NCBI RefSeq assembly: GCF_001194135.2
Contig: NC_068987.1
Coordinates: forward strand, 89,685,805 to 89,749,804
DNA length: 64,000 bases
Direction: 5' to 3'
DNA from: Octopus bimaculoides
Taxonomy: Eukaryota
Shown: one piece after another, positions 20,134-64,000 of the stretch
How the letters are laid out: each line of letters opens with the position of its first letter
Position numbering within the stretch: the first letter of the stretch is position 1
The notes under the pieces: generated by a model
What the model was told of the DNA's origin: nothing
The model's input: only the letters and a program-made list of their open reading frames with translations
The model's database searches: none
Position numbers and translations under genes: made by a program

Positions 20134-20651
20134 GTACGTATATATACCTAAACTCATTTCCACTGATTTTCTTCAGACATGCACTTACAGACGTTCGACC
20201 AGTGCATTGTCATGTATTTTTATTCATTTCCTTTTTATTAAAGCAACAACTCAAAGAATTAACACTGACCAATTCTGTGGCCAGTGGCATGTATTTGAAT
20301 AACAGATGAATACAGGTATTTGCCATATATAGTCTGAAGATTCCCAGTCCGGGATGAAACAGCGGTTCTCTGTGAAACTTCGAGTCTTCAAATTCCCACA
20401 ATAAATGTTTACTCTCTGAACGCAACGAGTTCTCTCTTAGTTGTACATGCCGTGGGCCCTTCTCCTTCTTTCCATGCACAATTACATTCATGTTTGGATA
20501 TACAAACAGAGAACAAGTAGTCTACATAGAACATAGCTTATTTATTTGTTCCAAGGTGATAATTTACTCCATTGCTAGTCAGAGTTTGTTTCAATTTCTG
20601 TACATGTGAAGAGCATCGGAATGGGTCATAAGTTTCAAATGTGTGTGTGTG

Positions 20652-20690
<39 letters not shown>

Positions 20691-23081
20691 TCAAAGAGAG
20701 AAGCGTATCTATTTTACTAATGAGAAAGAATTAAAATGTTAGCGAACAAGGAACGTGTAATCTACAGTTTTCACATTAACTAATTATTGATGAAATTTAA
20801 GAAAAATTACATCTTGTATGTGTATTTTTTATTGCTAGTCAGTAGCAATTTTATCTGCATTAATAAGTATGTTTGGATCTCTGTTTTTTATTAGCTGGTC
20901 ATTTAAACAACTCAGTAGAGTTGTTTGTGTCATAAAAAGCAGTAACTTCTTTTTCTTCCGTCTTTAACTTCAGTAAACATTAACATGGCTTCTCCACCAA
21001 AAAAATCTTATGTGCCGTTAAGTCGCGTTTCCGTTATCATATCCACTCTGGGTAATTAATAGCATTCTACCATTATCTTTTATTTGTTTCAGTCGTTGGA
21101 CTGCGGCCCTGCTGGTGGGGTACCGCCTTGAAAAATTTTAGTCGAACAAATTTACTCCATTACTTATCTTTTAAGTTTGGTACTTATTCTCTCTCTTTTC
21201 CGGGGACTAAACAAACCAACACCGGTTGTCACGTAGCTGTGGGGGACAAACATGTATAGAGTGAGTGGGTGAGAGCAAAATAAGCTAAATATAGATAATA
21301 CAGTAAGTCACCTCCTGAAACAGCTGTCGAGATAAGACATGTAATGTTTCCCCCCGTCATTTTACAATCTGTATTTTGTGCTCCATGTAAATATGCCCGA
21401 AGCTTGTATTTGCGATGAGCTTCTTTCAGTTTATGTCTATTCATTTACATAGCTTAGCCCGAGGCGATAATAGAAGTGGGACGGAACCCGGAACCCTGTA
21501 GTTAGGAAGCAAACTTTTTACCACACAGCCTATAAAGGTTATGAACTGTTTCAACCTTTTATTTTCAAGGTTTAATTTTATATGGTTCCATTACACCTTT
21601 CTTACTGCGTGTTCCCTTGATGGGTTTGTAGTGCTTATAGAAATCTCATGCCTCTTTAGTAATAGTTTCAGATCAGGCAGACATGAAGGAACTATTTCTA
21701 CTAAATAGTAGAAATAAGTACTTGTAATAAGACATGATTAGGCGAGGGGATAAGTTTTGATATGGGTGAGAACTTTTATTTAGAGAATTCTCTTTCGGAC
21801 GATAAATGTTAAGTTTAATTGTATTTACATATGGCATACATACGTAGCAGTTCTTTCAGACTCGCCGTAGTAAATACGTTGTATTCTAAATTTGTAGACG
21901 TCTGAGTAGTAGAACAAATATAAGACATGATCAGCTGAAGAATTCTTCGATCCAGTTTGTGAGTTACGGAGAGAGATAGGTAGGCTAAGTTCCATTCTCC
22001 AGCGTAGAATTTTATATAATTTTAATTCTTTTTCCCAATTTTTTTTCTTCTCTCAAACATAAATGTAATGGTTAGTTTATCTGTCACTAAGGGGGAAAAT
22101 GCTTTTTAACAGCCTCTGTGACTACAGAAGCTTCTTTTTCGGCATTGTGACTAAAGTTTTATTTTCAGAATGATTAGTGCCCAGAAAATTGCCACCAGTT
22201 TACCCACCGGAATGTTAATACTGTCTCCATTCTTTCATCTGTATCAAATATTTTTAATGGTAAACAACAAAATCTTGTCGACTTTGGTATTGTAGTATGC
22301 AAAGAACCCAAGCACCCATTGTAATTCTTTAGTGTTGAAAGATAAGTAGATTCTTCATCAAGAGGGCGAAGGCGTTGTGGATTGGAGCATAATTCTCTAT
22401 CTAAAATTAGATCAGCCAACAAGTTGATAGATGTTAGGCCTTTATTTACGTTTATTTTAGATTAACACATTCGACTGCTTTGAAGAAATTTGAGTCGTAT
22501 CATGTTCTGGTTTTGTTTCACGATAAACTTCATAGTTTATTGACTGAGAGCATGAGTCCTGTTACTTGAAAAGGCTGTGTATGATACCTCAATGATTTTA
22601 CTAACTTTATAGTAAGCGCTATTTAGATCAATTATGTTAATAACACTTGTTAGAACAACATTGCCCTCTCAATCATCTATAGTTAAACAGATCAGCGTCA
22701 AGCTCTGTAAAACTGTCAATAATTTAAGAGAAATCTGCGGATCTTTTTGTTAACGGAATTGACAATAACAACCAAAACCTGCGCCCACAGAGGCTTTTTA
22801 AAAATTTTTTTGAAAGAAGTTTTGAAATTTCTGGAAGTTTTTTTCTCTTTCAAACTGGACTGGCGAATTTTAGTTGCAACAAGTTTGCACTTGAGAGAGA
22901 TATTTCGATAAGGCTTAGTAACAAGTTTTCTAACCACTTATATATGTGAATAAAATCACAAATTAAAAAAAAAAAAGAATTCAGATTCTGTATAAATTAA
23001 ATTTCTTTGTGATCTCTTATCAGCTCAAAGTTGTGAAAGAAGAAAAAGTATTTTTTAAAATCTATTTTTGTAGATATTCTA

Positions 23082-23287
23082 CAGGGTGTCCACAAAGTCT
23101 GGGTACATGGAGTAAATAAAATCATAGCATAAACAATTAAATATAAAAAATAATTTCTTAAAGTATGTGTTAATCCCCATGTGGGTACATGGAGTTAATA
23201 AAATCATAACATAAACAATTAAATGTGAGAAATAATTTCTTAAAGTATGTGTTAATCCTAATCTACTCAGACTTTGTGGACACCCTG
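23082..23287. mobile_element. Tc1/mariner-type MITE with an internal ~80-bp tandem duplication
   Basis: TIR CAGGGTGTCCACAAAGTCTG, TA TSD at both ends. Confidence 0.85.
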
Positions 23288-24157
23288 TAGTTTATAAAGA
23301 CGGCATGAAATTTGTGCTGTTACTTCAGAATTAGCCAAGGAAACAACACTTATTTTTGGGATATATTTCCAGGTCGATTTGATTAGCTAAGTGTTGACAG
23401 GTGAACATTACAGATGAACCTGCGTCTTTGAGAATTTTGATAAAAATAATTTTCTCAGTTATCATACATGTAACAAGTACCAGAAAAGGGAGTTATCAAA
23501 GAAATAAATCCGGATTAAATAACCTTAGAAGATACTTTTTTTTGTGAGACAGAAGAGTTGTGGTCATCAGACCGGCAAACAGTGGCTCACAGTTCTCCCT
23601 TTTTTTACAGTTTTCACAGAACGTGGCACAGGAATGGATCTTGGGTTTGCCACTGAAAAAGCATCTTCTCCACGTTTAGTGTTTGTTGTGGTAGATTACT
23701 CAGATTATATTTATCATTATTTGTGGCATTGGTGAAACCTCAAGCATTTGACATGATTGTGTATTACGTTCTAAAACACCTTGTCTGTTGGACAGATGGC
23801 TGAAGCTTGATTTAGTGAATAACACTTAAGTATCTCTTAATATATTGATACAATTTCTGTGGAAAAGCTACAAATAACTTTTGAAGTCGTCAGGGGATCC
23901 GCATCAATTTACTCAAGTACCTAATATTTCAGCGAGCCATCAATACCAAAATCAATCAAAATACAAATTTGATACCTTTATGATGTAAGGGACATAACTG
24001 CGGTTACACATAAGCAGCTCTTGCAATATTCCACTAACTTTTTCTATTATTGCAACTCAGTGTGTTTTTAGAACTTGTATATCCTTGGTTCTAGATCAGC
24101 TTTGTTTGAATAGAATTATTGATCAAAGCCGTTTCATTCGCGTTCATCTTATATATA

Positions 24158-24508
24158 GAAATGGAAACCAAAACAATATATGATTTAACAATTAAATAAT
24201 TTAATCATTAACAATTCAATTTTATTATTTTATACAAATGACATCTCATAAATTACAGATGTTTCAACTCCATTAATAAAATCAAGTTTTTCAAGAATAA
24301 TAAAATACCGTTCATCAGATCAGCTTATCTTCTTAGATATCTCATGCAAAAAACGGTATTTTATTATTCTTGAAAAACTTGTTTTTATTAATGGAGTTGA
24401 AACAGCTGTACTTTATGAGATGTCATTTGTATAAAATAATAAAATTGAATTTATTATTTAATGATTAAATTATTAAATTGTTAAATTAATTGTTTTGGTT
24501 TCCATTTC
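24158..24508. mobile_element. AT-rich fold-back element, ~155-bp arms, ~40-nt loop
   Basis: 24158-24312 is a near-perfect reverse complement of 24352-24508. Confidence 0.8.
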
Positions 24509-24701
24509 CAATTTATATTTTTATATTGATAAACTATAAGTTTATTTATTTATTTACCTGTTTAAGTGCGATAGTTCATAACATTCTTCAAAACATTTAT
24601 TTGCCAATAAAAACCATTGGGTTTTTATTGGCAAAAGAACTCAATAAATTCTTTGGATATTTAATATCCCTTAGGTGGTTATTTAACACCTAGCTAAATT
24701 G

Positions 24702-24737
<36 letters not shown>

Positions 24738-26059
24738 GACTACTTTACCCAATGCATAATCTTTGACAGCAGGATGTATTTTTGAGTGAGATTTAGCTTC
24801 CTTTTCTACAAAGTCGAGCAACTGCAGAGAAAGCTTCCTTGTGTTTGCTAGAGCTATTTTACATGTGTTAATACCTGTGATATACAGGTAAGAGTTATGC
24901 CTGCAACAAGGCTTTATTTAAACAAAAGTATCTTTGTCTTACATAAGGTGTTAATGTCACAGAATTGTTTAAAGAATAGTTTTTATTTTTTTTTTAGAAG
25001 TGTTCTTTGGAAGTATTGCACGGAATAAGGAAAAAAGAATTATAATATTCTTCAAATTTCCCTGTTTAGTGCTTATTATCTAATTCAACATTTGGTAAAT
25101 GTCTTTTTGCCTGTTGTTACCAATGCCTGAATAAAAAATTATAAAAGGAAAGATTAATTAATTAATTAATCAATCAATTGATAATAAACTGAAATGAAAT
25201 ATCAGTCCATATGTTGGCAACATGATCCTCCCAATGTACAACAAATATATATTATAGCAAAAAACCTGTGCTTGTCTTGCTATCATCTTTAGCCTCTCAA
25301 CACCTGGCATAAAGCCACCTCCTTTCCCACCTCCCAAATACTCCCGCCTTCACATAGTCGAGAGGTTTTTCTTTTCCTGTTCTTGAAAGTTACTTGGCGT
25401 TCTCAGTAGTGCCAGTGATGCAAGAAAAGCACCCAGTACACACTGTAAAGTGGTTGGTGTTAGAAATGGCATCTAGCCATAGAAACCATGCCAAAACAGA
25501 CATTGGAGCTTGGCACTGCTTTGCAGCTTGCCAGATCCTGTCGAACCGTCCAACCCATGCCTGCATGGAAAGTGGATGTTAAATGGTGATAATAGTAATG
25601 TATAATACTAAAGAAATAAACAAATTTTTCCAAGCTTAACTTATGCATACTAAAATTCATAACTCTGGGTAAGTTGATATTCTGTGAATAGTCAAGAATC
25701 CTAATGTTTTAAACAAAGCATGTTTTTGGAGGAAGAAAAAAAGTCTCTCTTTTCAGTGAAGGATTTTATGAATTTATTCTGATTTACAAGCTTTGCTAAA
25801 TAATTTTTGCCCACCTCTGCTCAGCAGAAATTATTTGCTGTCTTTGTGTGTGTGTTTTGTAACCTGTTCAATGTATCAATTCTTGAATTAACCCTTTTGA
25901 TACCAACCTGGCTGAAACCGCCTTTGGCTCTAATGTACAAATGCCTTGTTTTCTTAAGTTTTGAATTAAAGTCTTCCACCAAACCTTAGTTACAATTTAT
26001 GTTCCTAACACTAACTTCATGATAACTAAGTTATTTTAATAAATTCTTTGTTATATACA

Positions 26060-26822
26060 TTATTTGCATTTGATGGAAATGTGCCACACCCTAGAGGTTG
26101 AGGGAACCTGTGGAAGAGGTAGATTCAGGAAGACCTGGGATGAGGTGATGAAGCACGACCTTCGAACATTAGGCCTCACTGAGGTAATGACTAGCGACCG
26201 AGACCTTTGGAAATATGCAGTGCATGAGAAGACCTGGCAAGCCAAGTGAGACCATAACCCATAGCCTATGCCAGTGGAGTAACCAGCCCACTTATGCATA
26301 CCTTTCCTTCATTTAGACACTAAACTCTGCTTGCGAAGACCTGTTGAGGCAAGTGAGATCGAAATCAAATTTGATGACTGGAACCCGTGCCAGTGGAACA
26401 CCATCCGAGCATGATCGTTGCCAGAGCAGCTGACTGGCTTCCTTGCCGGTGGCATGTAAAAAGCACCATTCGAGTGTGATCGTTACCAGTGTCGCCTTAC
26501 TGGCACTTGTGCTGGTGGCATGTGAAAAAGCATTCGAGCGCGGTCATTTCCAGTGCTGCTTCACTGGCTCCTGTGCAGGTGGCACGTAAAAAAATACCAT
26601 TTGAGCGTGGCCTTTGCCAGTACTGCCTGACTGGCCCTTGTGCCGGTGGCATGTAAAAGCATCCACTATACTCTGAGTGGTTGACATTAGGAAGGGCATC
26701 CAGCTGTAGAAACTCTGCCAGATCAGATTGGAGCCTGGTGCAGCCATCTGGTTTGCCAGTCTTCAGTCAAATCGTCCAACCCATGCTAGCATGGAAGGTG
26801 GATGTTAAACGATGATGATGAT
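26060..26822 (+). mobile_element. RTE LINE 3' end with tandem hairpin-unit 3' UTR and (ATG)n tail
   Basis: CHTLEVEGTCGRGRFRKTWDEV then the same 3' UTR as the 6.3-8.3 kb element. Confidence 0.85.
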
Positions 26823-27594
26823 GGATATTTGTCCTCATCTTGTTTGTTGTTAACACAACGTTTCGGCTGATATACCCTTCAGCCCACGGGCATATGGCGT
26901 AGTGGTTAAGAGCACAGGCTACTAACCCTAAGATTCTGAGTTCGATCCCAGACAGTGACCTGAATAATAATAATAGTATCGAAAAATACCTTGGGAATGA
27001 AAACCCAGGTTTGAAATTTCTCCAAGACACCTGATGAAGGCTGGAGGGTATATCATCTGAAATGTTGTTAACAACAACATTTTGGCTGATAACAAAATGT
27101 GTTAACAACAAACAAGATGAGGACAAATATCCGTCAAATGTAAATAATGTACATAATTCCTCATCTCTTAAATATAGGACTGTCTTTGTTATATTTAAAA
27201 TTAATTGAAAGAAATACAGAGCATCTAAACAGAAATATGGTAACAAAAGGGTCAAACAATTTAGAAGAAAGTGGGTATTACTATACATGCTTTCCACAAA
27301 TCGTCTAATCTATCTTTACACCCACTCTACTGCCCCCCCCTCTCTCTCCAATGTCATTTTAGAAATGATCACATTGAAATCTTGAAGCTATGAGATAATG
27401 CATGACTACTTCAAAGCAACAATACAGTTCTATATTTAAGAGATGAGGAATTATGTACATTATTTACATTTGACAGATATTTGTGCTCATCTTGCTTGTT
27501 GTTAACGCGTTTCTGCTGATACACCCTCCAGCCTTCACCAGGTGTCTTGGGGGAAATTTCGAACCTGGGTTCTCATTCCTATGGTATTTTTCAA

Positions 27595-27627
<33 letters not shown>

Positions 27628-27864
27628 AGTCACTACCTGGAATAAGGCTACTAATCCCAATATTCTGAGTTTGATTCCAGCATTGACCTGAATAATAATA
27701 ATAGTAATAATAATAATATCAAAAAATACCTTAGGAATGAGAGCCCAGGTTTGAAATTTTCCCCAAGACACCTGATGAAGGCTAGAGAGTATATCAGCTG
27801 AAACATTGTTAACAACAAACAAGATGAGGACAAATATCTGTCAAATATAAATAATGTACATAAT
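26823..27864. mobile_element. Cluster of four alternately oriented copies of a tRNA-head + hammerhead-like element
   Basis: Shared AAGACACCTGATGAAGGCTGGAGGGTATATCAGCCGAAACG...AACAAGATGAGGACAAATATC in -, +, -, + orientations; A/B-box head at 26888-26960. Confidence 0.75.
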
Positions 27865-27899
27865 GTACTTCAAAGCAATGTGCATAATTAATGCATTAC

Positions 27900-28290
27900 A
27901 TTTGACAGACTAATTTGAATGCTAAAGGGATAAAGCAGTTTTTTGCAGATTGGTGAAACTGCCATATCTGATCATATTAAGCCCTATGAAAATTATTGTT
28001 CCTGCTACAAGACCTGGAATTGTAGCTAATAAATTGGTCACTTTACCAAATATTACCATTATGATAACCATAACTTTTGCAATATGACTTGCAAGCTTTG
28101 TTATACTAATAATGGTAGTGTGCATGCTGTATGAAGTAGGGGCATGAGAGACCCCCATAAGTCTAGCTAATACATCCACTAGACCCTCAGGAAACAGCCC
28201 ATGGTTAATAATAGCTTCAACCCCAAAGGTGAGGGTATTATTTTTCATTTATCTTGAAGTAGGTGCCCAGAACAAAATGTCAGTGAATTG
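27900..28290 (-). pseudogene. SLC23/NAT (nucleobase-ascorbate transporter) gene fragment in SDR intron 1
   Basis: ORF 27922-28248 gives INHGLFPEGL..VLARLMGVSHAPTSYS...ITKLAS...GKVTNLLATIP..VAGTIIFIGLNMI...TNLQ, matching the SLC23 INRGIFxEG...TSYSENIG.I.ITKV.S...GK..AL.ATIP...SNLQ region; signature degraded and flanks frameshifted. Confidence 0.7.
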
Positions 28291-29249
28291 TTTGGCAGAT
28301 AGATGAATAAGGCAGCTTAGAAGTTTATTCTTTCAGTTGGCAGTTTTAATTTTTTTTTAGCCCAAGGGTTCATGTGGCCAGTTACTCAGTTTTCATAGCA
28401 TATAACTCACTGAGATCACAATATTCTCTTGAATGGGACACCAGTCCATTGCACAGTTTAGAGCCAGCAGTTTTCAATGGAAGGAGCAGATTGATTACAT
28501 TAATCCCAATACTTTCTGCTACTTTATTTTATTGGCAAAGTTGACCTTGGCAGGATTTGAACTCAGAATGTAAAGAACAGCAAGAAATGCTGTTATACAT
28601 TTTGCCTGACGTGCTAATTCTGCCAGCTCATTAGCTTATGTTGGCAGTTGTTCTGTCAAAATAAGCAAAGAATTTGTTACCCTCAACACAGTGGCAAGGA
28701 TCTCAGTTGACATGAAGCTCAGCCATGTGTATAAATTGTCGAAATGAGGCCAAATAGCTAGTGATGGAGCAACAAGGAGATTCCTGACAAAGTACCATTT
28801 AGAAAGAATTGCTAACGCTTGAAGTAATTCATTTGGCAATATTGCAATTAAGGCTTGTTGAAAACTTACAGGCCACTAGCTGTGTGTTGCATAAAAGCTG
28901 CATTTGGCTGCATTCGAAAGCTTAAATGAGGTTAATAGGAAAACTGTTTAGTTGTTGCCAGTGAGTCATTGCAATATTAGTTGATGAAGCAATTTTTAAC
29001 TTGTAAACAAATTATACTCCCAGTCCTCCTATTTTCACTCATCTCTTTCTCCAAGACAAAACTCTGTCTCCATCAGTAAAACTTGTTGCTACAAAAATAA
29101 CACCTTCCTGTATTGTTATCTAATTTCTTGCAAAAACAGTCATCTTTCACAAAGTGCAAGTTTCCAAGGATTTTTGCAATAGTGAAATATAGATTCATTA
29201 CATCTTTATGTCACAATCATACCTCTAAATTGTTATTACTTACATACAT

Positions 29250-33448: not shown

Positions 33449-36199
33449 ACAGTAATGTACTTGGATCTTCACTTACAAGGCATTGGTTGGCCTGTGGCTA
33501 TAGTAAAAGACACTTTCCCAAGGTGATGTGCAATGGGACTGAACTCAAACCCACATGGTTGCAAAACAAGCTTCTTAACCACACAGCCATGCTTGTTCTT
33601 ATAATATAATTACTTTAAGGCAGCAGATTAATGATTTAGAATAGTCTGTTGGTCATTGAGGCACCACTGAAGACATTGTCTTGTGAAGGTCTATCAAGGG
33701 CAAGTCAGGCTAACAGAACCCACTTGTTTACCAATTATAAATCTTATGATGTGGTCTTGAAATGCTGTATGTTTTCAAGTTTTTCTTTTTCAGACCATGT
33801 GACACAATTTAATCCAATACATGAGCAGAGGGATAATTTAAATGTTCGTTTTTAACTTGCATTCAGTTTGATTTCAAGAAGCTGTTCATGCCAGCAACCT
33901 TGTTATTGCTTAATCCATTAATGCTTATTTATTTACATTGTTTTGGAGCGTGGTTGTTGCCAGTGCCCCTGGACTGGCTATTGTGCGGGTGGCATGTAAA
34001 TTACACCATTTTGAGCGTGGCCGTTGCCAGTACCGCTGACTGGCCTTCGTGCCGGTGGCATGTAAAAGCACCGACTACACTCTCGGAGTGGTTGGTATTA
34101 GGAAGGACATCCAGCTGTAGAAACTCTGCCAAATCAGATTGGAGCCTGGTGTAGCCACCTGGTTCGCCAGTCCTCAGTCAAATCGTCCAATCCATGCTAG
34201 CATGGAAAGCAGACGTTAAACGATGATGATGTGTTATCTGATGGCTTTGAGATTTTGACGATGTGATTGCTCATTTTTAGAATGACATTTCAGAGTATGT
34301 CTGAGAGGCCAGATCTGGCTAGTTTGCACATAGAACAAGTAGAATATTTTGGCCGGATGTGTCTTGTTTAAATGCTAAAGAGCTAAGCTGATAACATATG
34401 CTCTACATACATTTATAAGTCTGCCATAGATTGTTATGTCTGGGTTTGGCTGAGTCTTATCTGTTGTAGTGATGCATTTGGTCTCATAAACATTAATTCG
34501 GAGACCCATTTGTTTTGCATTTGCAGCTGAGTAATGAAACCTTGATGGTTAGCAATGTTATTGTTAATAGTTAGCAAGATCATCTGCATTAACATAGATT
34601 AGAGATTATTTGACATGCAATAGAGAATCCAGTATCATTTATTTCTTTCATTTTTATGGTCACTGCAACAAAATGTTTCCTTGCTTGACCTCTTTCATTA
34701 TGTCCATGATCATACTTGTACCAACATTGATCTTGAGAATGTGAATTAACTTTCATATTTAAATATATGGAGGCCACTTTTGGGCCTGCTATATAACCCG
34801 TTTTAGTGGGGCAGCAAATGTGGTACATACTCCAGCTATGTCACTGGACCAAACAACAATAGACACCACTTTTTTCTCTTAAGTGTTGTGTTGTGTTGGT
34901 TTTCAACAGGTGAATCAATAGGTATCAGATAGTTGTTCTCATAAATTACGCAAACGTTATTCAGGTATGATTTATTATACTTTGTGGCAAAACACATTTA
35001 TGTCAAAATGTAACAAGCAATTTGTCTTATGAAACTTGATTGAGTATTAAGTTATCGGCATGTTTTGTCCTATTAAGTATTAGTTTCCAGTTAAGAATTG
35101 AAAAAGTTATAGTTTGGTGTTATAATAATGTTAAAACTGGTAATTTCTCTCAGGCCAAGGAGTAAGTTTATACTTGACTTGTTAGAAATAACAGCCAAAA
35201 AAAGGAAGCTTCTATGCAGCCACTTGACCTGCTAAAACAGTAGCTAGTTTACCTCCTTACACACGACTGATTAACACACATTGAAGATGGGTAACCACCC
35301 AGAAACCCAGGTCTGTGTGTATTATGTAAGGCTAGAGATGGGATCGATGACTTCCCTTGCAAATACTAATTGGACACAGATTGTGTGTTGTTGGCCAGAT
35401 GGAGGAGATGTCTTCCTGGGGCTAAAAACAATAGTAACATCATCCTCTCTAGGACTGCCACATTTAGTTGGCAAATATATTTTATGAAACCCAGATTGTT
35501 GAAAATTGACAAACTTCTTTTAAACTAGCAAGGGTAGGGATATAGTTACAGTATGTGCTGCCCTTATGTTTGACCCCCCCCCCTCACACACCAGCAGTAT
35601 AGCCTCTACAGGTTTATTTAGCAGAACTAAAGTGCCTCCCTAATAAAAGCCTTGCTTGGAGTGGACAGCTCCCCCTCCTCAGTTATTGAATGAGAAAGCT
35701 TTTATTTGGTCACTTGATCTGTTAGAAATAGTAGCCTGAGCAACAGAGGGAGCCTCTTCTAAATAGAGGTTCGACCTGTTTAAAATAGCAACCAAATTTC
35801 CTCTAATCACATCCTTAAAATAAAGAACACACATTGGCGAATGTACTTATTGACATGCAAAATGGTGTGATGGCCATAACTGAAATGTCATTTTTTATCA
35901 GTTAATCTACACGTAAATGACAACTGTTACCTTCTGTTTGACTTTGTGTATTGAGAAGTGTTAGGGGCCTCCCTCCTCTCATTGTCTTGTAGGTTTCAGT
36001 CATTGGGTTGCTGTTGTGCTGAGGCACAGCTTTGGAAGGTTTCAGCTGACCAGGTTGACCACAGTATTTATTTTTTTAAAATTTGGTATTTTTTCTATTG
36101 GTCTCTTTTGCCGAACCACTTCAATGCAGGGCCATAAACAAACCGACATCGATTGTCAAGAGCTGGTGAGGATACAAGTACTGCAATACCACTGGATGG

Positions 36200-36500
36200 G
36201 TGATGTCAGTGTGCACACACAACAGAGCGTAAGTGATGATTCAAGAGGAAAACTGGGTATAACAGGCATTAGATGTTGTGTGCAAGAGAGAAGACTACAC
36301 TGGCTTGGTCATGTGATGTGTGTGGATGAGGACAGCTGCATAAAGAAGAGCCAGTCTCTAATTGTAGAGGGAACCTGTGGAAAGGGTAGGCCCTGGAAGA
36401 CATGGGAGTAAGTGGTGAGAAAGGATCTTCAGATACTGGGCCTCACTGAGGAGATGACAACGAACCAACACTTGTGGTGATTTGCTGAACTTGAGAAGAT
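36200..36500 (+). mobile_element. RTE LINE 3' coding fragment
   Basis: VQERRLHWLGHVMCVDEDSCIKK...GTCGKGRPWKTW. Confidence 0.75.
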
Positions 36501-37325: not shown

Positions 37326-37507
37326 GTAAGTGCACCTTAGGTTGGTGTATGTAATGTCTTTTGTAATGTTGTTGTTTAACTTATAATTCCCTGATTGAAT
37401 AAATCTACGGGATAAGGCATTTTAATCTGACCATCCTATTATTTTTGCAAGCCTAGTGTTAGAAATAACTTCTTGTAACCGTTATATTTTTGCTTCCAAT
37501 TCTTCAG

Positions 37508-37690
37508 GTCTGTGGGGTCTTGTCAACAATGCTGGGATTTCTTACTTTGCTGAGACTGAAATGACATCTGAAGAAATATTCCAGAAGACAATTAATGTTA
37601 ATCTTTTTGGTACAATTCGATTGACAAAAGCATTCTTACCTTTCATTAGGAGAAGCAAAGGTAGAATAATCAACATGGCCAGTTTCGTTG
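37508..37690 (+). CDS. SDR exon 4 ([10 protein letters not shown]...VNLFG...[10 protein letters not shown])
   Basis: CAG acceptor, GTAATT donor, 183 nt; LWGLVNNAG and GRIINxxS motifs. Confidence 0.96.
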
Positions 37691-39416
37691 GTAATTTCCT
37701 TTTTTTCTTTGTTTCTTACTTTCTTGAATAGCTTTATTGGAAGACAGTTTGCCAATTTCATGTTAAAACATTCTATCAAAGAAAACCTTCTGCCGTTGGT
37801 TACTCGGGGATGCCATCTGCATGTGAAACAGCAGTTGAGTTATTGTTAATATATTTAATTTAACGAGTATCAAAAATCGATTTTAGAAATAGCTGTATGA
37901 TTCAGAAGTTTGCTTCCCAAGCACGTGGTTTCAAATTCCAGCTTCAATGTGCGTCACTTTGGTCAAGTCTCTTCTTCTGCAGTGTCTTGGCATCACATGG
38001 CAGTTGAAAATCTGTGTCATTCAATTCCAATATTGTGTGAAAACATACAGAAATATTATTTTGCTTGGAAACAGGTGAGGGTTGGTGACAGGAAGGGCAT
38101 CCAGCTGTAGAGCATCTGGCTCAATAAACTGTGTCTGAAGTGGACATTAAAGCTATGATGATAGTGATTACCTTTTGGAAATCTTTCTACACTTGTTTGA
38201 AAACTGAGTGTTTAAGTTCAAAAAGTTGGTTGTTTGATTATTTTTAGTCTTACCTGAAAGTCACCCGTTTCACTTCACTTCTTTCTCTCTCTCATCATCT
38301 TTGGTGAAGTCATTGGAACACATCTCTTGGCTCTTACATTCCTCCCAACTGGTGGAGTGATTGAACTGTCTATGCCAGTTTGTATCTCCATCTACCAATA
38401 TTTCTGACCAAACACATTATTTCCTTATCTCCAAACCCAGCCATTACTCACTGGATCTTCTGATCAGGCTATCTTATATTTCCTTCCTCCACTACACACA
38501 CCTTAAAGCCAGATAACCAATTTTATACCAACAGCAAAATATGGTTTAACCTTTTCCCCTTATGAGATAATTCATTACCATAACCTTTGGACATTCTTGT
38601 ATCAAGTCTCAAGATCCAAAGGGTTGGTTGCCTGTTTTCCATGGTGTACACGTGACTGAGATGATAGCATTCCCCCTGGATGGGAAGTCAGTCCCTCACA
38701 GTCACTCACTCATTGTAGCTGAGTGGACTGGAGCAATGTGAAATGAAGTGTTTAGCTCAAGAACGCACCACCTTGTCCAGGAATGGAAACCATGATGTTG
38801 TAATTGTGAATGCAACTCTCTAACCACTAGGCTATGTGGCTGAGAAAACTCAGCAGGTACTTAGAACTCTCCTTCTACATCTCTTACACAAACCTCATAA
38901 GACCAAAGCCCACAGCTTCCAACATTGAGTGCAACTCCACCAACAACAACGAGATGTTGTTTTTATCCACATTGCCTGCAACAGCAGACTTCAAAAAAAA
39001 GCAAGGCCTCACTCAACCTGCAAGCTCCCTTGCTTTCCAAAATGCAGCAGAACCTTCTGCTTTAACTTTTGCTGTTGTTTAGTCCAGATCACTCCTGACT
39101 GAGAAACATGATGAAAGACATTCCATCTTTGACCATCCTATCTTTCCCAAAAGTACAGTGCAGTTGGGATTACAGAGCTGAATATCTTTCTTATTTCTAA
39201 ATTGGTAAGATGCAATATGAAGGAAATTTGGTTCCACTTTTAACTGACTGAGGGCCTTTAGCATAGAGAATCTGTAGTTGGTTTGGTTTTACTTTTGTAG
39301 ATAACCTAAATTAATTTAATTATCTGTATCTTAATACTTTTGATGGTGAACTCTAGTATTCTGTTAAATTCTCTTCTGCATAATTCTATTCTGATTTTCC
39401 CCAACTGTCTTTACAG

Positions 39417-39554
39417 CAAGAATTCCTATCAACGGGACAAGTGCTTATTCTGTTTCTAAAAGTGCCATTGTTGCCTTCTCAGATATTCTGCGTCTTGAAA
39501 TGAAAAAATGGGACGTTCATGTTTCCATCATTGAACCACTTGGATTTCAAACAA
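39417..39554 (+). CDS. SDR exon 5 (catalytic YSVSK; LRLEMKKWDVHVSIIEP)
   Basis: CAG acceptor, GTAAGT donor, 138 nt; YxxxK active-site motif. Confidence 0.96.
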
Positions 39555-46300: not shown

Positions 46301-49300
46301 ACATGGCTGTGTGCTTAAGAAGTTTGCCCCCAAACCATGTGGATTTGGGTTCAGTCACATCACGTGGCACCTTGGGCTAGTGTTTTCTTCTATAACCCCA
46401 TGCTGATGAAAACCTTGTGAATGAATTTGGCAGATGAAAATTGAAAGAAGCTGGTGTGTGTGTGTGTGTGTGTGTGTGNNNNNNNNNNNNNNNNNNNNNN
46501 NNNNNNNNNNNNNNNNNNNNNNNNNNNNNNNNNNNNNNNNNNNNNNNNNNNNNNNNNNNNNNNNNNNNNNNNNNNNNNNNNNNNNNNNNNNNNNNNNNNN
46601 NNNNNNNNNNNNNNNNNNNNNNNNNNNNNNNNNNNNNNNNNNNNNNNNNNNNNNNNNNNNNNNNNNNNNNNNNNNNNNNNNNNNNNNNNNNNNNNNNNNN
46701 NNNNNNNNNNNNNNNNNNNNNNNNNNNNNNNNNNNNNNNNNNNNNNNNNNNNNNNNNNNNNNNNNNNNNNNNNNNNNNNNNNNNNNNNNNNNNNNNNNNN
46801 NNNNNNNNNNNNNNNNNNNNNNNNNNNNNNNNNNNNNNNNNNNNNNNNNNNNNNNNNNNNNNNNNNNNNNNNNNNNNNNNNNNNNNNNNNNNNNNNNNNN
46901 NNNNNNNNNNNNNNNNNNNNNNNNNNNNNNNNNNNNNNNNNNNNNNNNNNNNNNNNNNNNNNNNNNNNNNNNNNNNNGTGTGTGTGTGTGTGTGCGTGCG
47001 CGTGCGTGCGTGTGCGCGCGCGTCCTTGTCTTGACATCATGTGATGGTTGTAAATGAACATCACTGTCAAACAAGTGAGGTTGTTTGTATCCAGTATTCC
47101 ATGAACGACATATCTGGACATGAGGAAATATTATCTTGCAGGGAAATGGTGTGGGTTGGTGACAGGAAGGGCATCCAGGCTGTAGAAAATCTGCCTCCAT
47201 GAATCCTGTCTGACTCATGCCAACATGGATCTTAAATGGTGGTGGTGATGGTGGTAAGTGTTTGCTACATTAGAATACAATGAATGGTTATTGATTAGGT
47301 AGCTGCTATAGCTTGTAGTTACAATGGTCAAATGCCAAGAACATGCCTTTGCTGAGACCAACACAAGATTGAATATTGGGGTAAAATGAGTTGAATGGTT
47401 GATTTGTCACTTTATTGATTTAGGAATTCATGTTTCGTGCAACATTTGATTCTGTCCTTTGGTATCAATGCATGGCTGTGGGATCAAGAAGCTCATTTTG
47501 TAATCATGTGGTTTTAGGTTCAATCCCACTGTGTGGCACCTTGAGCTGGTGTCTTCTATGATAGCTTCATGTTGAACAGTGCCTTTTGAACATATTGGTA
47601 GACAGAAACTGTGTGGAAGCCTGGTGTGTGTGTGGGGGGGCTCCTGTGCAGGTAGCACATAAAGAGCACCATTTGAGTATGGTCAATCAATGCCAGTGCA
47701 GTCTGACTGGCGCCCGTGCCAGTGGCATGTAAAAAGCACCATTCTGTCATGGTCAATGCCAGTGCCACCTGACTAGCCCCTGTGCTAGTGACACGTAAAA
47801 AGCACCAATTGCACTCTTAGAGTGGTTGGTGTTAAGAAGGGCATCTAGCTGTAGAAACCTTGCTAGATCAGATTGGGGCCTGGTTTAACCCCCAGTCAAA
47901 CTGCCCAACCCATGCCAGCATGGAAAGTGAATGTTAAACGATGATGATGATGATGATATACATACGTGTGTGTGTGTGTTTGTCCCCCCCCCCAACCACT
48001 GCTTGGTTTGTCTTTGTCCCTGTAACTTAACAGTTCAACAAAGTAACAGTAAGTATCAAACTTAAAGATAAGTACCGTTCTTCAAGGTGGTGCCCCAGCA
48101 TGGCCGTGGCCCAATGATTGAAACAAGTAATAGATATATGTATATATGTGTGGGTGTGTGAACGTATATAACTCCTTATGTCAAACAAGTAGGAAATTTG
48201 CCAGCATCGACTCTGTTTTGGGGGAATCAATCTGGAAATGTTACCAATGGCCTGGGTTGTGATTCTGTGTCCTGTTCAGAAGGAGAAATATCTACATCCT
48301 GTTTACTCACAACTCTATAATATTCTGCAGCTTATTTTATAAGCTGCCTCTTTAGTCCACAACATTTAATAAATCATCGTATATGATATGTTTCAGGTGA
48401 TTCTGGTGACCAAAGCTTATGTTGCTGTAATGGCCATGCTCCAATGAATAGCACAGATGCTTACAGAGAAGTGATTATCAATTCAATGGCTTTCAAGTGC
48501 AAAAAAAGAAGGCCCTAAAATAGCTTTTATCTGTTTAATAATATATATTTTTCTTGTTTTGTTTTTGTCTCGCGCACTCAAGGTCATTGATTGCTGCTGC
48601 TGCTGTTAGTGGTGTAGGAAGGAAGTGTTGTTGGTTTGCTTTCAATGTTTTATGTATTTTTATTTTTGTATATTTAGTTTTTGTTTCTTAATATTAGTTA
48701 TTTTGTGTGGTAGAGACATCACGTTACTCCATTTAATATCATTTACTGTCCCTTTTGTTGAGTTCCCTCTATTATAAACGTTTGAATCCAGCTTCCAGTA
48801 GGAATTACGCTTATCATCACCTCATAACACATTGGCATATTCTACACATTCCTAGATGTCAAAATTTACCACCAAAGCAACATGACATTTCTCCCCCTCC
48901 CCTCTAATACCCGTGGACTCCAATCCAATTTAGGACAGACACATTACCACTTATATCATGCAATTCTCCCACCCTATTCTCACTCAAACCTCTCACCTTT
49001 TATTGTCCATCTCTGCTGTCCAGCTTACACCTCCATATTCAAACTCTGCTTTAAGAAGGTAGTATCTGTGCACGTGTGTAGACACCACTCTTTCTGTTGC
49101 TCACCTGTAAAAGGAGTAACCTCAAAGTCACCTGTATTCACTCACCTGTAAATGAGAAACCCTGTAATGGCCTAGCATCCCATTCAGGGGGAATGTTGTG
49201 ATTTTGGTCATTTAATACGCCATAGGAACTAGGTAACTGGCCCTATGACTCTAAAAACTTGAGGCAGTAATGTCCAGGGGCTTGAGGCTGATGATGTCAC

Positions 49301-49540: not shown

Positions 49541-50709
49541 GATATTAATCTTGGGCATGTACTTACTAGTGCCAGGAATCTTGTCCGTCTGTTTGCTAGA
49601 GGCCTCAGCCACCTGGTAGCTAGCGACAGTCACTTGACAGTGGCTGTCATCTTGGTTGAGAATGAAAGTGAGACTATATTTTTAGAGATGAAAATCTGCA
49701 CAGAGGGAACTTGTTAGGGAAGGTATAAATCTCAAAGCCCTTTCTGACTTGAATGGCTTGTCAAGATGTATCTTTTTGTTTTTGGCAGAGAGCCAAGATC
49801 TCGCATGTGGGGCGCTGCAAACAGCTTAAGGGCCTTCTGTCCACAGACAAAAGGGAGACAATATAACTGCCTGTTGCCAGTATATAAACACAACAGAACA
49901 TTAACAATAGAAGAATGTTGTCACAGAACTAGCAGCAGCAATAACAGCAAAAACTATCTAGAAAAATAATTTTTTGTGAATTTAAATTTAGCAAAAAGCG
50001 AAATGAAACGAAACAAAAAAAAAAAAAAAAAAAAAANNNNNNNNNNNNNNNNNNNNNNNNNNNNNNNNNNNNNNNNNNNNNNNNNNNNNNNNNNNNNNNN
50101 NNNNNNNNNNNNNNNNNNNNNNNNNNNNNNNNNNNNNNNNNNNNNNNNNNNNNNNNNNNNNNNNNNNNNNNNNNNNNNNNNNNNNNNNNNNNNNNNNNNN
50201 NNNNNNNNNNNNNNNNNNNNNNNNNNNNNNNNNNNNNNNNNNNNNNNNNNNNNNNNNNNNNNNNNNNNNNNNNNNNNNNNNNNNNNNNNNNNNNNNNNNN
50301 NNNNNNNNNNNNNNNNNNNNNNNNNNNNNNNNNNNNNNNNNNNNNNNNNNNNNNNNNNNNNNNNNNNNNNNNNNNNNNNNNNNNNNNNNNNNNNNNNNNN
50401 NNNNNNNNNNNNNNNNNNNNNNNNNNNNNNNNNNNNNNNNNNNNNNNNNNNNNNNNNNNNNNNNNNNNNNNNNNNNNNNNNNNNNNNNNNNNNNNNNNNN
50501 NNNNNNNNNNNNNNNNNNNNNNNNNNNNNNNNNNNNNNNNNNNNNNNNNNNNNNNNNNNNNNNNNNNNNNNNNNNNNNNNNNNNNNNNNNNNNNNNNNNN
50601 NNNNNNNNNNNNNNNNNNNNNNNNNNNNNNNNNNNNNNNNNNNNNNNNNNNNNNNNNNNNNNNNNNNNNNNNNNNNNNNNNNNNNNNNNNNNNNNNNNNN
50701 NNNNNNNNN

Positions 50710-52901: not shown

Positions 52902-53534
52902 CTGTTACATCTGGGACAGTAAGACCTGTAGGCTACACTTAGTCTTTCGGCCGATTGCTTATGTGACATAAATCTGCTTGATTAAGATCAACCTAGGCCT
53001 AAACAGCAACAGAAGAATTCGAACTGTATACGATCCTACTCTTATCATCACTATTTAACATCCACTTTTCTATGCTTGCATGGGTCAGACGGAATTTTTT
53101 GAGACAGATTTTCAATGGCTTGATGCCCCTTCTGTCGCTAACCCTCACCCATTTCCAAGTAAGGCTATATTTCCCCCATGGCCAAACTTGTTTTTCATGG
53201 AAGACTAGAAACTAACAACCTCTCATGTATGACGATGATACACACACACGCGCATACGCACACACATACACACACATACATACACACATATAGTATACAC
53301 AATGTGCTTCTTTCAGTTTCCGTCTACCAGATCCACTGACAAGGCTTTGGTCGACCCAGGGCTATAGTTGAAGGCATTTACCCGAGATGCCACGCATTCG
53401 GATTGAACCTAAGACTACTTAGTTGGGAAGCAACTGCAATGCCTGGAATCTACATTTGTATTTAGTATCGAGAACGCTTTCTTGATGTAGTTTTTTTTTC
53501 TCAGCCATATTGTCAAGAAAGAAGATCAACTTAC

Positions 53535-53714
53535 AGGAGAAATTTCTGGTTGGATGGAAATGTGTTGTATTCCTGCTTTCTTCATTAATTGTTTGATTTG
53601 ATGAAAAGAGTTGAGGAAATGAGAAGACGTGACAACATAATGCAACGTGATAACAACTGTATTGTCTGTTAGCTGCCATAAATGAAGTTCATGGACATTG
53701 AGAACACCAGGAAC
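53535..53714 (-). CDS. ZnT-like exon (C-terminal domain VPGVLNVHELHLWQL...GIQHISIQPE)
   Basis: CAG acceptor, GTAAGT donor, 180 nt; VHELHxWQL and IQPE motifs of the ZnT C-terminal domain. Confidence 0.92.
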
Positions 53715-55968: not shown

Positions 55969-56051
55969 TATTTTCTTAATTTGTTCCATGAAGTCTTCAG
56001 CTCGAATATCATTTGGAAGAGTTTGCAGCATGATGTGTGATGTTCTGTAAA
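55969..56051 (-). CDS. ZnT-like exon (YRTSHIMLQTLPNDIRAEDFMEQIKKI)
   Basis: CAG acceptor, GTAAGA donor, 83 nt; matches the ILLQTVP motif after TM6. Confidence 0.88.
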
Positions 56052-61192: not shown

Positions 61193-61390
61193 GTAATGGT
61201 AAATTGGTGATAATGATCAAAGAAATAATACAGATTGTAATCAAAGGATCAGCGTAGTGGCACCAGTGACCTTCTCCGAAAATACTGAGAAGTCCGCTCA
61301 AGATTAGTCCAAGAGATGCTAAATTATTCCCGATCACGTGAACACAAAGCAGATATAAATCAACATGACCTTTTTTTGTTTGAACCTGGT
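61193..61390 (-). CDS. ZnT-like exon (TM5 LCVHVIGNNLAS; TM6 YADPLITICIISLIII)
   Basis: CAG acceptor, GTAAGT donor, 198 nt (phase 1 to 1), in frame with both neighbours; YxDP start of TM6. Confidence 0.9.
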
Positions 61391-62612: not shown

Positions 62613-62658
<46 letters not shown>

Positions 62659-62702
62659 GTATCTGTTCTTGTAGGATTAATGCATTGTTAACGTTTACTT
62701 AC

Positions 62703-63063
62703 ATGCGATAAGTTTTTCTTCCGACAGCTTTACCGCTTGAGAATGTTTGCTAGTACAAGACAGACTGTTATAGCCACAATCCTTGTCATCTTCATAACAT
62801 TTCAGTTTCTTGTTCTTTCGTCTCTGCCGGTTCAAAGCCACAGCAAGTATAATCAAACAAAGGAGGTTGACACTAAGTCCAACACAACCCATGATAACAA
62901 TTATAGATGGTTGTTTCAGCTCCACTGTTGTGATTAGACGCTTCGCTGTGTGACTGATGATGGATATTGACAGAGCTAAAATGAACGTGGAATTAGCAAA
63001 GCCACCAAGAACGTAGCAACGTCCATAACCGTAGGTGTTTTTTTCCTTTCTATTTCGAGCTAT
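62703..63063 (-). CDS. SLC30/ZnT1/ZnT10-like CDF transporter exon (TM3, TM4, cytosolic loop)
   Basis: TAG acceptor, GTAAGT donor, 361 nt; KNTYGYGR...VLGGFAN...QPSIIVIMGCVGLSVN aligns by eye to ZnT1 KNTFGWIRAEVMGALVN...QPLVVLGVGVAGLLVN. Upstream exons (TM1-2) not found in the window. Confidence 0.88.
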
Positions 63064-63129
63064 CTATTGAATATGAAAATACAAAAAAAGATATCAAGTT
63101 ATAACATATACAGTATTTGGTGGCATATA

Positions 63130-63410
63130 AGACACTTTCCAAAAATATGTCTCAAACAATAAGTCGGTCTCCCTGGGTCCTGTATGTAAAGTTGGGTCTC
63201 CAATAAGCATTAATGCACTTCACACTTTTTCCTGGACATGTGCTACTGGAATTGCAGTATGTCTAATATTCCTGTGTCTTTTAAGGCCATTACATACGGT
63301 ACATTCCTTCACAATGTCTTTAACTCGATTTCTTCGACTTCAGAAATAAAGTGTCTTTTACTCATTAATTGAAGGTTTATAGGCTTGTGGACATTTTATT
63401 TTCTCATTTG
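63130..63410 (-). mobile_element. Degenerate LTR-retrotransposon integrase zinc-finger relic
   Basis: LYF*...VKDIVKECTVC resembles the H2C2 YxW...V..C..C motif; multiple stops. Confidence 0.4.
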
Positions 63411-64000
63411 AAGGACATTAGAAGCAAGGAGTTGAGATATATTAAAACCAAAAGAAAAAAATAAAAGTTTGTGTCGTAGGAAGTTTTCTTATATTGAGAG
63501 ATAAAGTCCTTAGGTACAGCCAGTGGGACTATTTCGGTATTGGTTCAGTATTATACTCGAATATAAATTATCGACTGTCGACACGACACTCTTTACAAGA
63601 GAAATTATATTAGTAATATTGAAATAATAGATAACTTAATTTGTACTAAATTTACTGTTTCATTCATATGAAGATATTCAGCAAGTAACCAGATTTCAAA
63701 ATCAATTCTAAGAGCTATATTTTCCAATAAACTAATATAAGGTTGAGAGAAAGAAAGAGTTAACTAGCTTTGTTTGCATCGGAGAATGTCTTCTGCAATG
63801 TGCTGGCTGAGTAACGTCGTATGGAGAATTTATCTAGTCGAAGAGAAAGATAAATATCTGTTTTTCTGCAGGAATTAACAGAACAATAGCCCCAAAATCT
63901 TGTAGTAGATTAGAAATCGAATCGCTGGATAGCTGTGCAGATACTACGGTAAAATCACTGTCGTTTCACGTGATCGGCGGATTAAGTGACCAATTGACGT

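Follow-up and report, generated by a model that had tools for sequence, protein, structure and literature searches.

The 64,000-nucleotide stretch of Octopus bimaculoides DNA analysed here (the window) carries, on its minus strand, exons 2–5 of LOC106872797, with splice phases that are consistent across the four exons. Their spliced product is identical to residues 59–334 of the O. bimaculoides protein XP_014775396.1 ('uncharacterized protein LOC106872797'), confirming that the host is a coleoid cephalopod, as a preliminary description of the sequence had supposed. Exon A (62703–63063; IARNRKEKNTYGYGR...EEKLIA) encodes TM3, TM4 and a TM4–TM5 loop that lacks a His-rich stretch; it is bounded by the acceptor ttcaatag/ATA and the donor GCA T/gtaagt (phase 1), and HMMER searches against PDB chains aligned it to residues 67–133 of ZnT1 and 69–134 of SLC30A10. 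Exon B (61193–61390; (Y)QVQTKKGHVDLYLLCVHVIGNNLAS...HYADPLITICIISLIIITNLPL) supplies TM5 and TM6 between the acceptor ttccag/AC and the donor TTA C/gtaagt, and its split codons (T+AC, Tyr; C+TT, Leu) match those of the adjoining exons. The end of TM6 and the linker to the cytoplasmic domain are encoded by exon C (55969–56051; (L)YRTSHIMLQTLPNDIRAEDFMEQIKKI; acceptor ttttgcag/TT, donor ATA/gtaaga), and the cytoplasmic ZT_dimer domain by exon D (53535–53714; VPGVLNVHELHLWQL...GIQHISIQPEISP; donor CCT/gtaagt).

The deposited O. bimaculoides model (334 residues) runs past the exon D donor into the intron (GTA AGT TGA; window positions 53526–53534), so that the protein ends ...EISPVS at a stop codon at 53528–53526. 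A last exon (VGEYDEN..., with a Cys-rich tail) is present in O. sinensis, where it follows exon D at a distance of about 4.2 kb (27227–27376 of that locus), and in Argonauta; it had no match within the 64-kb window. We infer that the missing exon probably sits in an assembly gap of 673 N at 50037–50709, which would explain the read-through end of the deposited protein. At the other end of the gene, the TM1/TM2 exon was absent from positions 63064–64000 in all three frames and by tblastn; TM2 was read instead in the gene's deposited protein and at the O. sinensis and Argonauta loci. A word-index homologue search returned no matches with exons A and B only and recovered the octopus orthologues once exons C and D were added.

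Several other features share the window. Exons of a short-chain dehydrogenase/reductase lie on the plus strand at approximately 20170–20309, 37456–37731 and 39437–39496, carrying in turn the motifs KVVLITG, NNAG (Pfam adh_short, E = 1.8e-16) and the catalytic YSVSK. Retroelement-like open reading frame fragments occur at 7089–7941 (minus strand) and 36016–36411 (plus strand); among the retroelement-like frames, one contains a PHD finger (E = 2.3e-05) and one is broken by a run of N. The intron just downstream of exon A contains a run of about 50 T on the minus strand (62621–62672). Microsatellites of the (TG)n/(CA)n type adjoin several N gaps (for example 53230–53320 and 46400–47060), and such borders probably explain these gaps. 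In Argonauta, the downstream neighbour of the transporter gene is a CPAP/CENPJ-like gene (20397–28382 of that locus, minus strand) with Tubulin-bind_CPAP and Tcp10_C domains.

The family assignment made in the preliminary description, a ZnT-like transporter, was upheld by profile searches and by alignment to SLC30A10 and ZnT1. Exons A and B together matched Pfam Cation_efflux (PF01545) with E = 8.9e-19 and 68.5 bits, and the complete O. bimaculoides protein scored E = 3e-27 and 96.1 bits (cut-off 26.6 bits for both), and the ZT_dimer profile matched with E = 4e-07 and 30.4 bits (cut-off 26.7). The best PDB sequence matches were SLC30A10 and SLC30A1, with E = 5e-10 for SLC30A10 when only the two exons were used. 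An AlphaFold2 model of the O. sinensis protein (pLDDT 83, pTM 0.75) predicted helices at residues 4–31, 34–61, 72–102, 110–152, 188–216 and 222–252, followed by a beta-alpha-beta domain, and thus the six transmembrane helices and alpha/beta dimerisation domain that define the CDF/SLC30 superfamily. In Foldseek, human ZnT1 was the top match to this model (E = 4e-19), SLC30A10 gave a TM-score on target of 0.82, and all matches listed at E ≤ 0.001 were ZnT or YiiP structures. By sequence and structure, the protein is nearest to ZnT1/ZnT10 (group 3, which includes fungal ZRC1/COT1) and not to the other ZnT groups. Databases already list it under automatic names ('cobalt uptake protein COT1-like', 'zinc transporter 1-like').

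The TM5 motif of site A, at 61326–61340 on the minus strand, reads H-V-I-G-N (CAC GTG ATC GGG AAT), with Asn where canonical ZnTs have Asp. Its codons are CAC (61340–61338), GTG (61337–61335), ATC (61334–61332), GGG (61331–61329) and AAT (61328–61326), followed by a second AAT (61325–61323), giving H-V-I-G-N-N over 61340–61323. Both the motif with its AAT codon and the G on the 5' side of the first A of that codon were correctly reported in the preliminary description; this A occupies 61328, where the plus strand has T, and the G occupies 61329. In HMMER alignments to all PDB chains, HVIGN falls against HVMGD in human SLC30A10, HVLGD in human ZnT1 and HVLGN in one deposited ZnT1 mutant chain. 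In the aligned TM5 column, all 58 canonical relatives (100%) have Asp, and an 85-sequence alignment shows Asp at a frequency of at least 90%; the Asn is therefore not chance drift at a variable position. An orthologue alignment had been proposed as a check on the residue, and it returned AAT at the same codon in the independently assembled genomes of O. bimaculoides, O. sinensis and Argonauta hians; the bivalve Solemya velum has AAC there. Codons flanking the site vary synonymously between O. bimaculoides and Argonauta (CAC/CAT, GGG/GGA, TTA/TTG, GCA/GCT, TCT/TCC).

Retrieval of the TM2 motif, likewise proposed as a check, yielded RxxxD and not HxxxD. Every member of the clade has D-S-Y-R-(V/I)-L-x-D, in which the Asp is kept and the Arg occupies the position of His in ZnT1 and of Asn in ZnT10. 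Two of the four site-A ligands are non-canonical in consequence of TM2 His to Arg and TM5 Asp to Asn/Ser, and the tetrad is neither the H-D-H-D of ZnT1 nor the N-D-H-D of ZnT10: it is R-D-H-N in O. bimaculoides, O. sinensis, O. vulgaris, Argonauta and Solemya, and R-D-H-S in Sepia esculenta and one further decapodiform-type species known from Logan transcript contigs. To place this tetrad among relatives, we searched 1.84 billion representative proteins exhaustively with HMMER, using the O. sinensis orthologue as query, and aligned the best 150 matches. Among the approximately 165 aligned sequences (the best 150 listed plus others that were retrieved), H-D-H-D was found in 142 and N-D-H-D in six, and R-D-H-N/S was seen only in the mollusc clade. 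Site A has been defined by BxxxB motifs in TM2 and TM5, where B is H, D, N or E (PMC10932157); the TM5 HxxxN fits this pattern and the TM2 RxxxD fails it, as Arg lies outside the set.

Within the clade alignment R42, D46 and H196 are invariant; N201 is also invariant across the cephalopods, with Solemya sharing the R, D and H. Next to the TM2 Arg lie two further clade-specific changes, Phe to Tyr and Met to Val/Ile, and after the TM5 motif Ala is replaced by Asn/Leu. The clade has also lost the TM3 Glu of the RAE motif, the Asn of the LNxRG motif and two His of the cytoplasmic domain, and it retains the TM1 Glu, TM2 Asp, TM3 Arg, TM5 His, TM6 Asp-Pro, HELHxW, QPE and the C-terminal Cys motif. 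In octopods, the His-rich TM4–TM5 loop is missing: three columns of conserved His are A/N/Q in Octopus and L/A/E in Argonauta, and the loop of about 60 residues has a sole His, in SKHS, and none in Argonauta.

The O. sinensis orthologue is 94% identical to the O. bimaculoides protein and that of Argonauta hians 68%. A Sepia esculenta orthologue of 427 residues (43% identical) was obtained as intron-free contigs from 84 RNA-seq runs; for four of the ten runs listed, papers give S. esculenta larvae as the source. Its assembly from RNA-seq shows that the cuttlefish orthologue is expressed, including in larvae. The Sepia mRNA contigs read H-V-I-G-S with the codon AGC, and a second decapodiform-type transcript set (SRR27666085, SRR27666071) has the same HVIGS/AGC and groups with Sepia. 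The Solemya homologue, which matched a profile of the clade with E = 1e-91, reads H-V-L-G-N, and its intron positions are those of Octopus. Cephalopods and Solemya formed one clade with neighbour-joining bootstrap support of 100/100, apart from the H-D-H-D ZnT1-like proteins of gastropods and pectinid bivalves and from lamprey SLC30A10, in a simple distance tree in which the R-D-H-N/S clade sits on long branches. Among named sequences, SLC30A1-like proteins of gastropods, bivalves and amphioxus come nearest. No canonical H-D-H-D ZnT1 gene of octopus was retrieved among the homologues, and the tree is accordingly the basis for paralogy. These sequence comparisons place LOC106872797 in an old, mollusc-wide paralogue clade of the SLC30A1/SLC30A10 branch, and indicate that its TM5 Asn is encoded in the genome as part of a fixed, ancient remodelling. 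We found no paper that mentions the accession numbers of the gene or a mollusc clade with such a site.

The gene is under purifying selection, with Nei-Gojobori dN/dS values of 0.18 against O. sinensis and 0.17 against Argonauta. Among the transmembrane parts, constraint is strongest on the TM5–TM6 exon (dN/dS 0.10–0.13 by the same method).

Comparison with characterised transporters helps to frame what such a site might do. Human SLC30A1 (ZnT1, a Zn/proton antiporter; PDB 8xmf, 8xma, 8zsb), the best structural match and a top sequence match, shares with the clade the six helices and ZT_dimer domain and the motif residues retained from TM1 to QPE and, in the orthologues, the Cys-rich C-terminal motif. 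It differs in its H-D-H-D tetrad, in the His-rich loop that octopods lack, and in the TM3 Glu, LNxRG Asn and two cytoplasmic-domain His that the clade has lost; overall identity is about 23–25%. The PDB also holds double Asp-to-Asn mutants of ZnT1 (D47N/D255N, 8j2g), ZnT8 (D110N/D224N, 6xpd) and ZnT4 (D150N/D281N, 9jj3), which we take to have been made as forms that do not bind zinc at the site. These carry the TM5 Asp-to-Asn change of the clade, but they are laboratory constructs in which the TM2 Asp is changed too and the TM2 His is kept. Human SLC30A10 (ZnT10; PDB 9kvx, 9kvy), the best PDB sequence match and the one with the highest TM-score on target, carries Mn through NxxxD/HxxxD and, like the octopod proteins, has a loop without His (PMC10932157). 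It likewise departs from H-D-H-D, by one polar substitution; in ZnT10, however, TM2 His is replaced by Asn and the TM5 Asp is kept, whereas the clade has TM2 Arg and TM5 Asn, and lamprey SLC30A10 (N-D-H-D) falls outside the mollusc clade. The precedent for a CDF protein that acts only as a partner is SLC30A6 (ZnT6), with plant MTP12: the canonical ligands are lost and the fold and dimerisation domain are kept, and ZnT6 does not transport (PMC10932157). ZnT6 belongs to group 4 and its motif is wholly lost, whereas the clade keeps two ligands and its replacements are strictly conserved. A natural Asn at the end of the TM5 motif in working transporters is known from the plant proteins AtMTP11 and ShMTP8, whose DxxxD/DxxxN sites carry Mn/Cu (PMC10932157); unlike the clade, these belong to the Mn-CDF group, with three acidic ligands and no Arg.

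We consider it probable that the R-D-H-N/S clade represents an ancient remodelling that left site A self-neutralised, and that its members serve as non-zinc-transporting partners or regulators or, less likely, as carriers of an altered substrate. Exchanging a neutral His for a permanently charged Arg, and an Asp for a neutral Asn or Ser, would raise the charge of the site by +2. This shift would equal the charge of the missing divalent ion, leaving the site charge-neutral without metal and, self-neutralised in this way, resembling one that holds a metal ion or two protons. Site A would then be unlikely to exchange Zn2+ for H+ in the canonical way, and the protein would most likely serve, like ZnT6, as a dimer partner or regulator that does not carry zinc, through its retained dimerisation domain. 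The Asn would on this account be an evolved part of the remodelling and no placeholder awaiting RNA editing. We infer the charge compensation, including the placement of the Arg within the site, from sequence.

Two quite different origins for the Asn were weighed against this reading. That it is an assembly or sequencing artefact, or that the gene is a decaying pseudogene, is scarcely credible: the draft sequence of the window contains ten runs of N and the deposited protein is truncated by intron read-through, but the same AAT in three independently assembled genomes, together with AAC in Solemya, led us to reject a base-calling or assembly error. Against decay, the gene keeps open reading frames and sound splice sites in all four genomes compared (those of three octopods and of Solemya), mRNA contigs from two decapodiform species carry the coding sequence at full length and without interruption, dN/dS is close to 0.17 and the cuttlefish orthologue is expressed. 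The preliminary description had also proposed that ADAR edits the first A of the AAU codon (61328) to give GAU (Asp), restoring the TM5 HxxxD as a regulated switch of transport. The host does belong to the coleoid cephalopods, in which RNA recoding is very extensive (PMC8382921), and AAU to GAU takes one A-to-G change; in Argonauta, moreover, the 5' neighbour of the target is A (GGA AAT), which ADARs tolerate better. Even so, we hold such a switch to be very improbable, and on the sequences compared it is unsupported. Because every member has the TM2 Arg, an Asn-to-Asp edit would not restore a canonical zinc site, the edited tetrad being R-D-H-D. The Asn is genomically encoded (AAC) in Solemya, a bivalve, and to our knowledge bivalves are not known for recoding on the coleoid scale; in cuttlefish mRNA the codon is AGC (Ser), from which A-to-I editing cannot make Asp. 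ADARs disfavour a 5' G, the neighbour present in both Octopus genomes read (O. bimaculoides and O. sinensis). Within the local range covered by our checks, beyond which a more distant pairing partner might lie, folding of the surrounding 297 nt gave -54.2 kcal/mol, no better than shuffled versions of it (mean -57.3; z = +0.70), and no inverted repeat covering 61320–61335 was present within 5.5 kb. Conserved coleoid editing sites usually lie in sequence with reduced synonymous divergence, and the dS of this exon against Argonauta is 1.36, not depressed relative to the other exons (0.74–1.61). The searchable supplements of editing papers (Zhang 2023 and the accessible part of Shoshan 2021) contained no entry for the gene or for a zinc transporter, and no transcript-derived octopus protein was present in the 90% cluster. 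Editing of other kinds could still occur: the decapodiform AGC comes from mRNA sequence only and differs from the AAC of Solemya by a single A-to-G change, so that it could reflect a near-complete Asn-to-Ser edit rather than a genomic change, and the Octopus AAU could be edited at either A in some tissue. In an A/G comparison of ten Sepia transcript contigs, just two coding positions varied (one T/G, one G/A). More generally, a cephalopod codon that is one edit from canonical is no evidence of a switch when the rest of the site and relatives that do not edit show a fixed residue. The two other readings in the preliminary description, altered specificity and a non-transporting subunit, gained from the TM2 RxxxD and the change of two ligands, and the restoring edit found no support.

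The more serious competitor is an active transporter of changed selectivity, in which the R-D-H-N/S site still binds and moves something else than Zn2+, for instance a different metal, a proton or monovalent cation, or even an anion drawn in by the Arg. We regard this as possible, though distinctly less likely than a partner role. The invariance of R42, D46, H196 and N201 among the cephalopods, with R, D and H common to Solemya, and the strong constraint on the TM5–TM6 exon (omega about 0.1) speak for it, as does the fact that single tetrad changes switch ions, Asn in ZnT10 conferring Mn and DxxxD/DxxxN in plants Mn/Cu (PMC10932157). Invariance of R42, D46 and H196 suggests a working and not a decayed site and fits a carrier of altered substrate at least as well as a passive partner, and the working plant Mn/Cu transporters that end TM5 in xxxxN count against our preferred explanation. 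On the other side, Arg lies outside the H, D, N, E ligand set of site A (PMC10932157). It would also be a poor metal ligand, in a site left with one acid and no net negative charge, and the octopod proteins lack the His-rich loop, the TM3 Glu and the two cytoplasmic-domain His. We prefer the partner or regulator reading because of the ZnT6 precedent and because of the loss of the His-rich loop and of other conserved residues.

A more speculative idea, to which we give little weight, is that the conserved Arg acts as a tethered cation that has converted the antiporter scaffold, in molluscs, into a new carrier or gated partner (for example for a proton, a monovalent ion or an anion), tuned by the Asn or Ser opposite. 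Lys or Arg is known to take the place of a cation site in transporters of other folds, ApcT and CaiT among them, which offers an analogy.

The four-residue TM2/TM5 site is the accepted determinant of substrate in CDF/ZnT proteins, and most of what is known of its selectivity (ZnT10 and Mn) and of silent subunits (ZnT6) was learned from natural variants. An R-D/H-N site kept under purifying selection from bivalves to cephalopods would amount to a natural experiment in which the charge of a bound metal is built into the protein. A site containing Arg should interest CDF specialists, and it lies within the known range of site degeneration in the family.

Three further sequences met during the searches deserve mention. 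The O. vulgaris model CAI9726333.1 (559 residues) has an aberrant N-terminus, and DDRGCRYQQL repeats replace its Cys-rich tail; it looks like a mis-prediction through a tandem repeat. In the search of representative proteins, OAF71896.1 of Intoshia linei (768 residues) ranked third, behind the query and the Sepia orthologue; in it two complete H-D-H-D CDF units are fused in one polypeptide, reflecting either a tandem-duplicated gene or a merged gene model. A krill ZnT1-like protein (Meganyctiphanes norvegica, CAL4100328.1) has a natural HxxxN in both TM2 and TM5, matching the engineered ZnT1 mutant with both site Asp residues changed to Asn, and degenerate sites seem to have arisen more than once in the ZnT1/ZnT10 subgroup.
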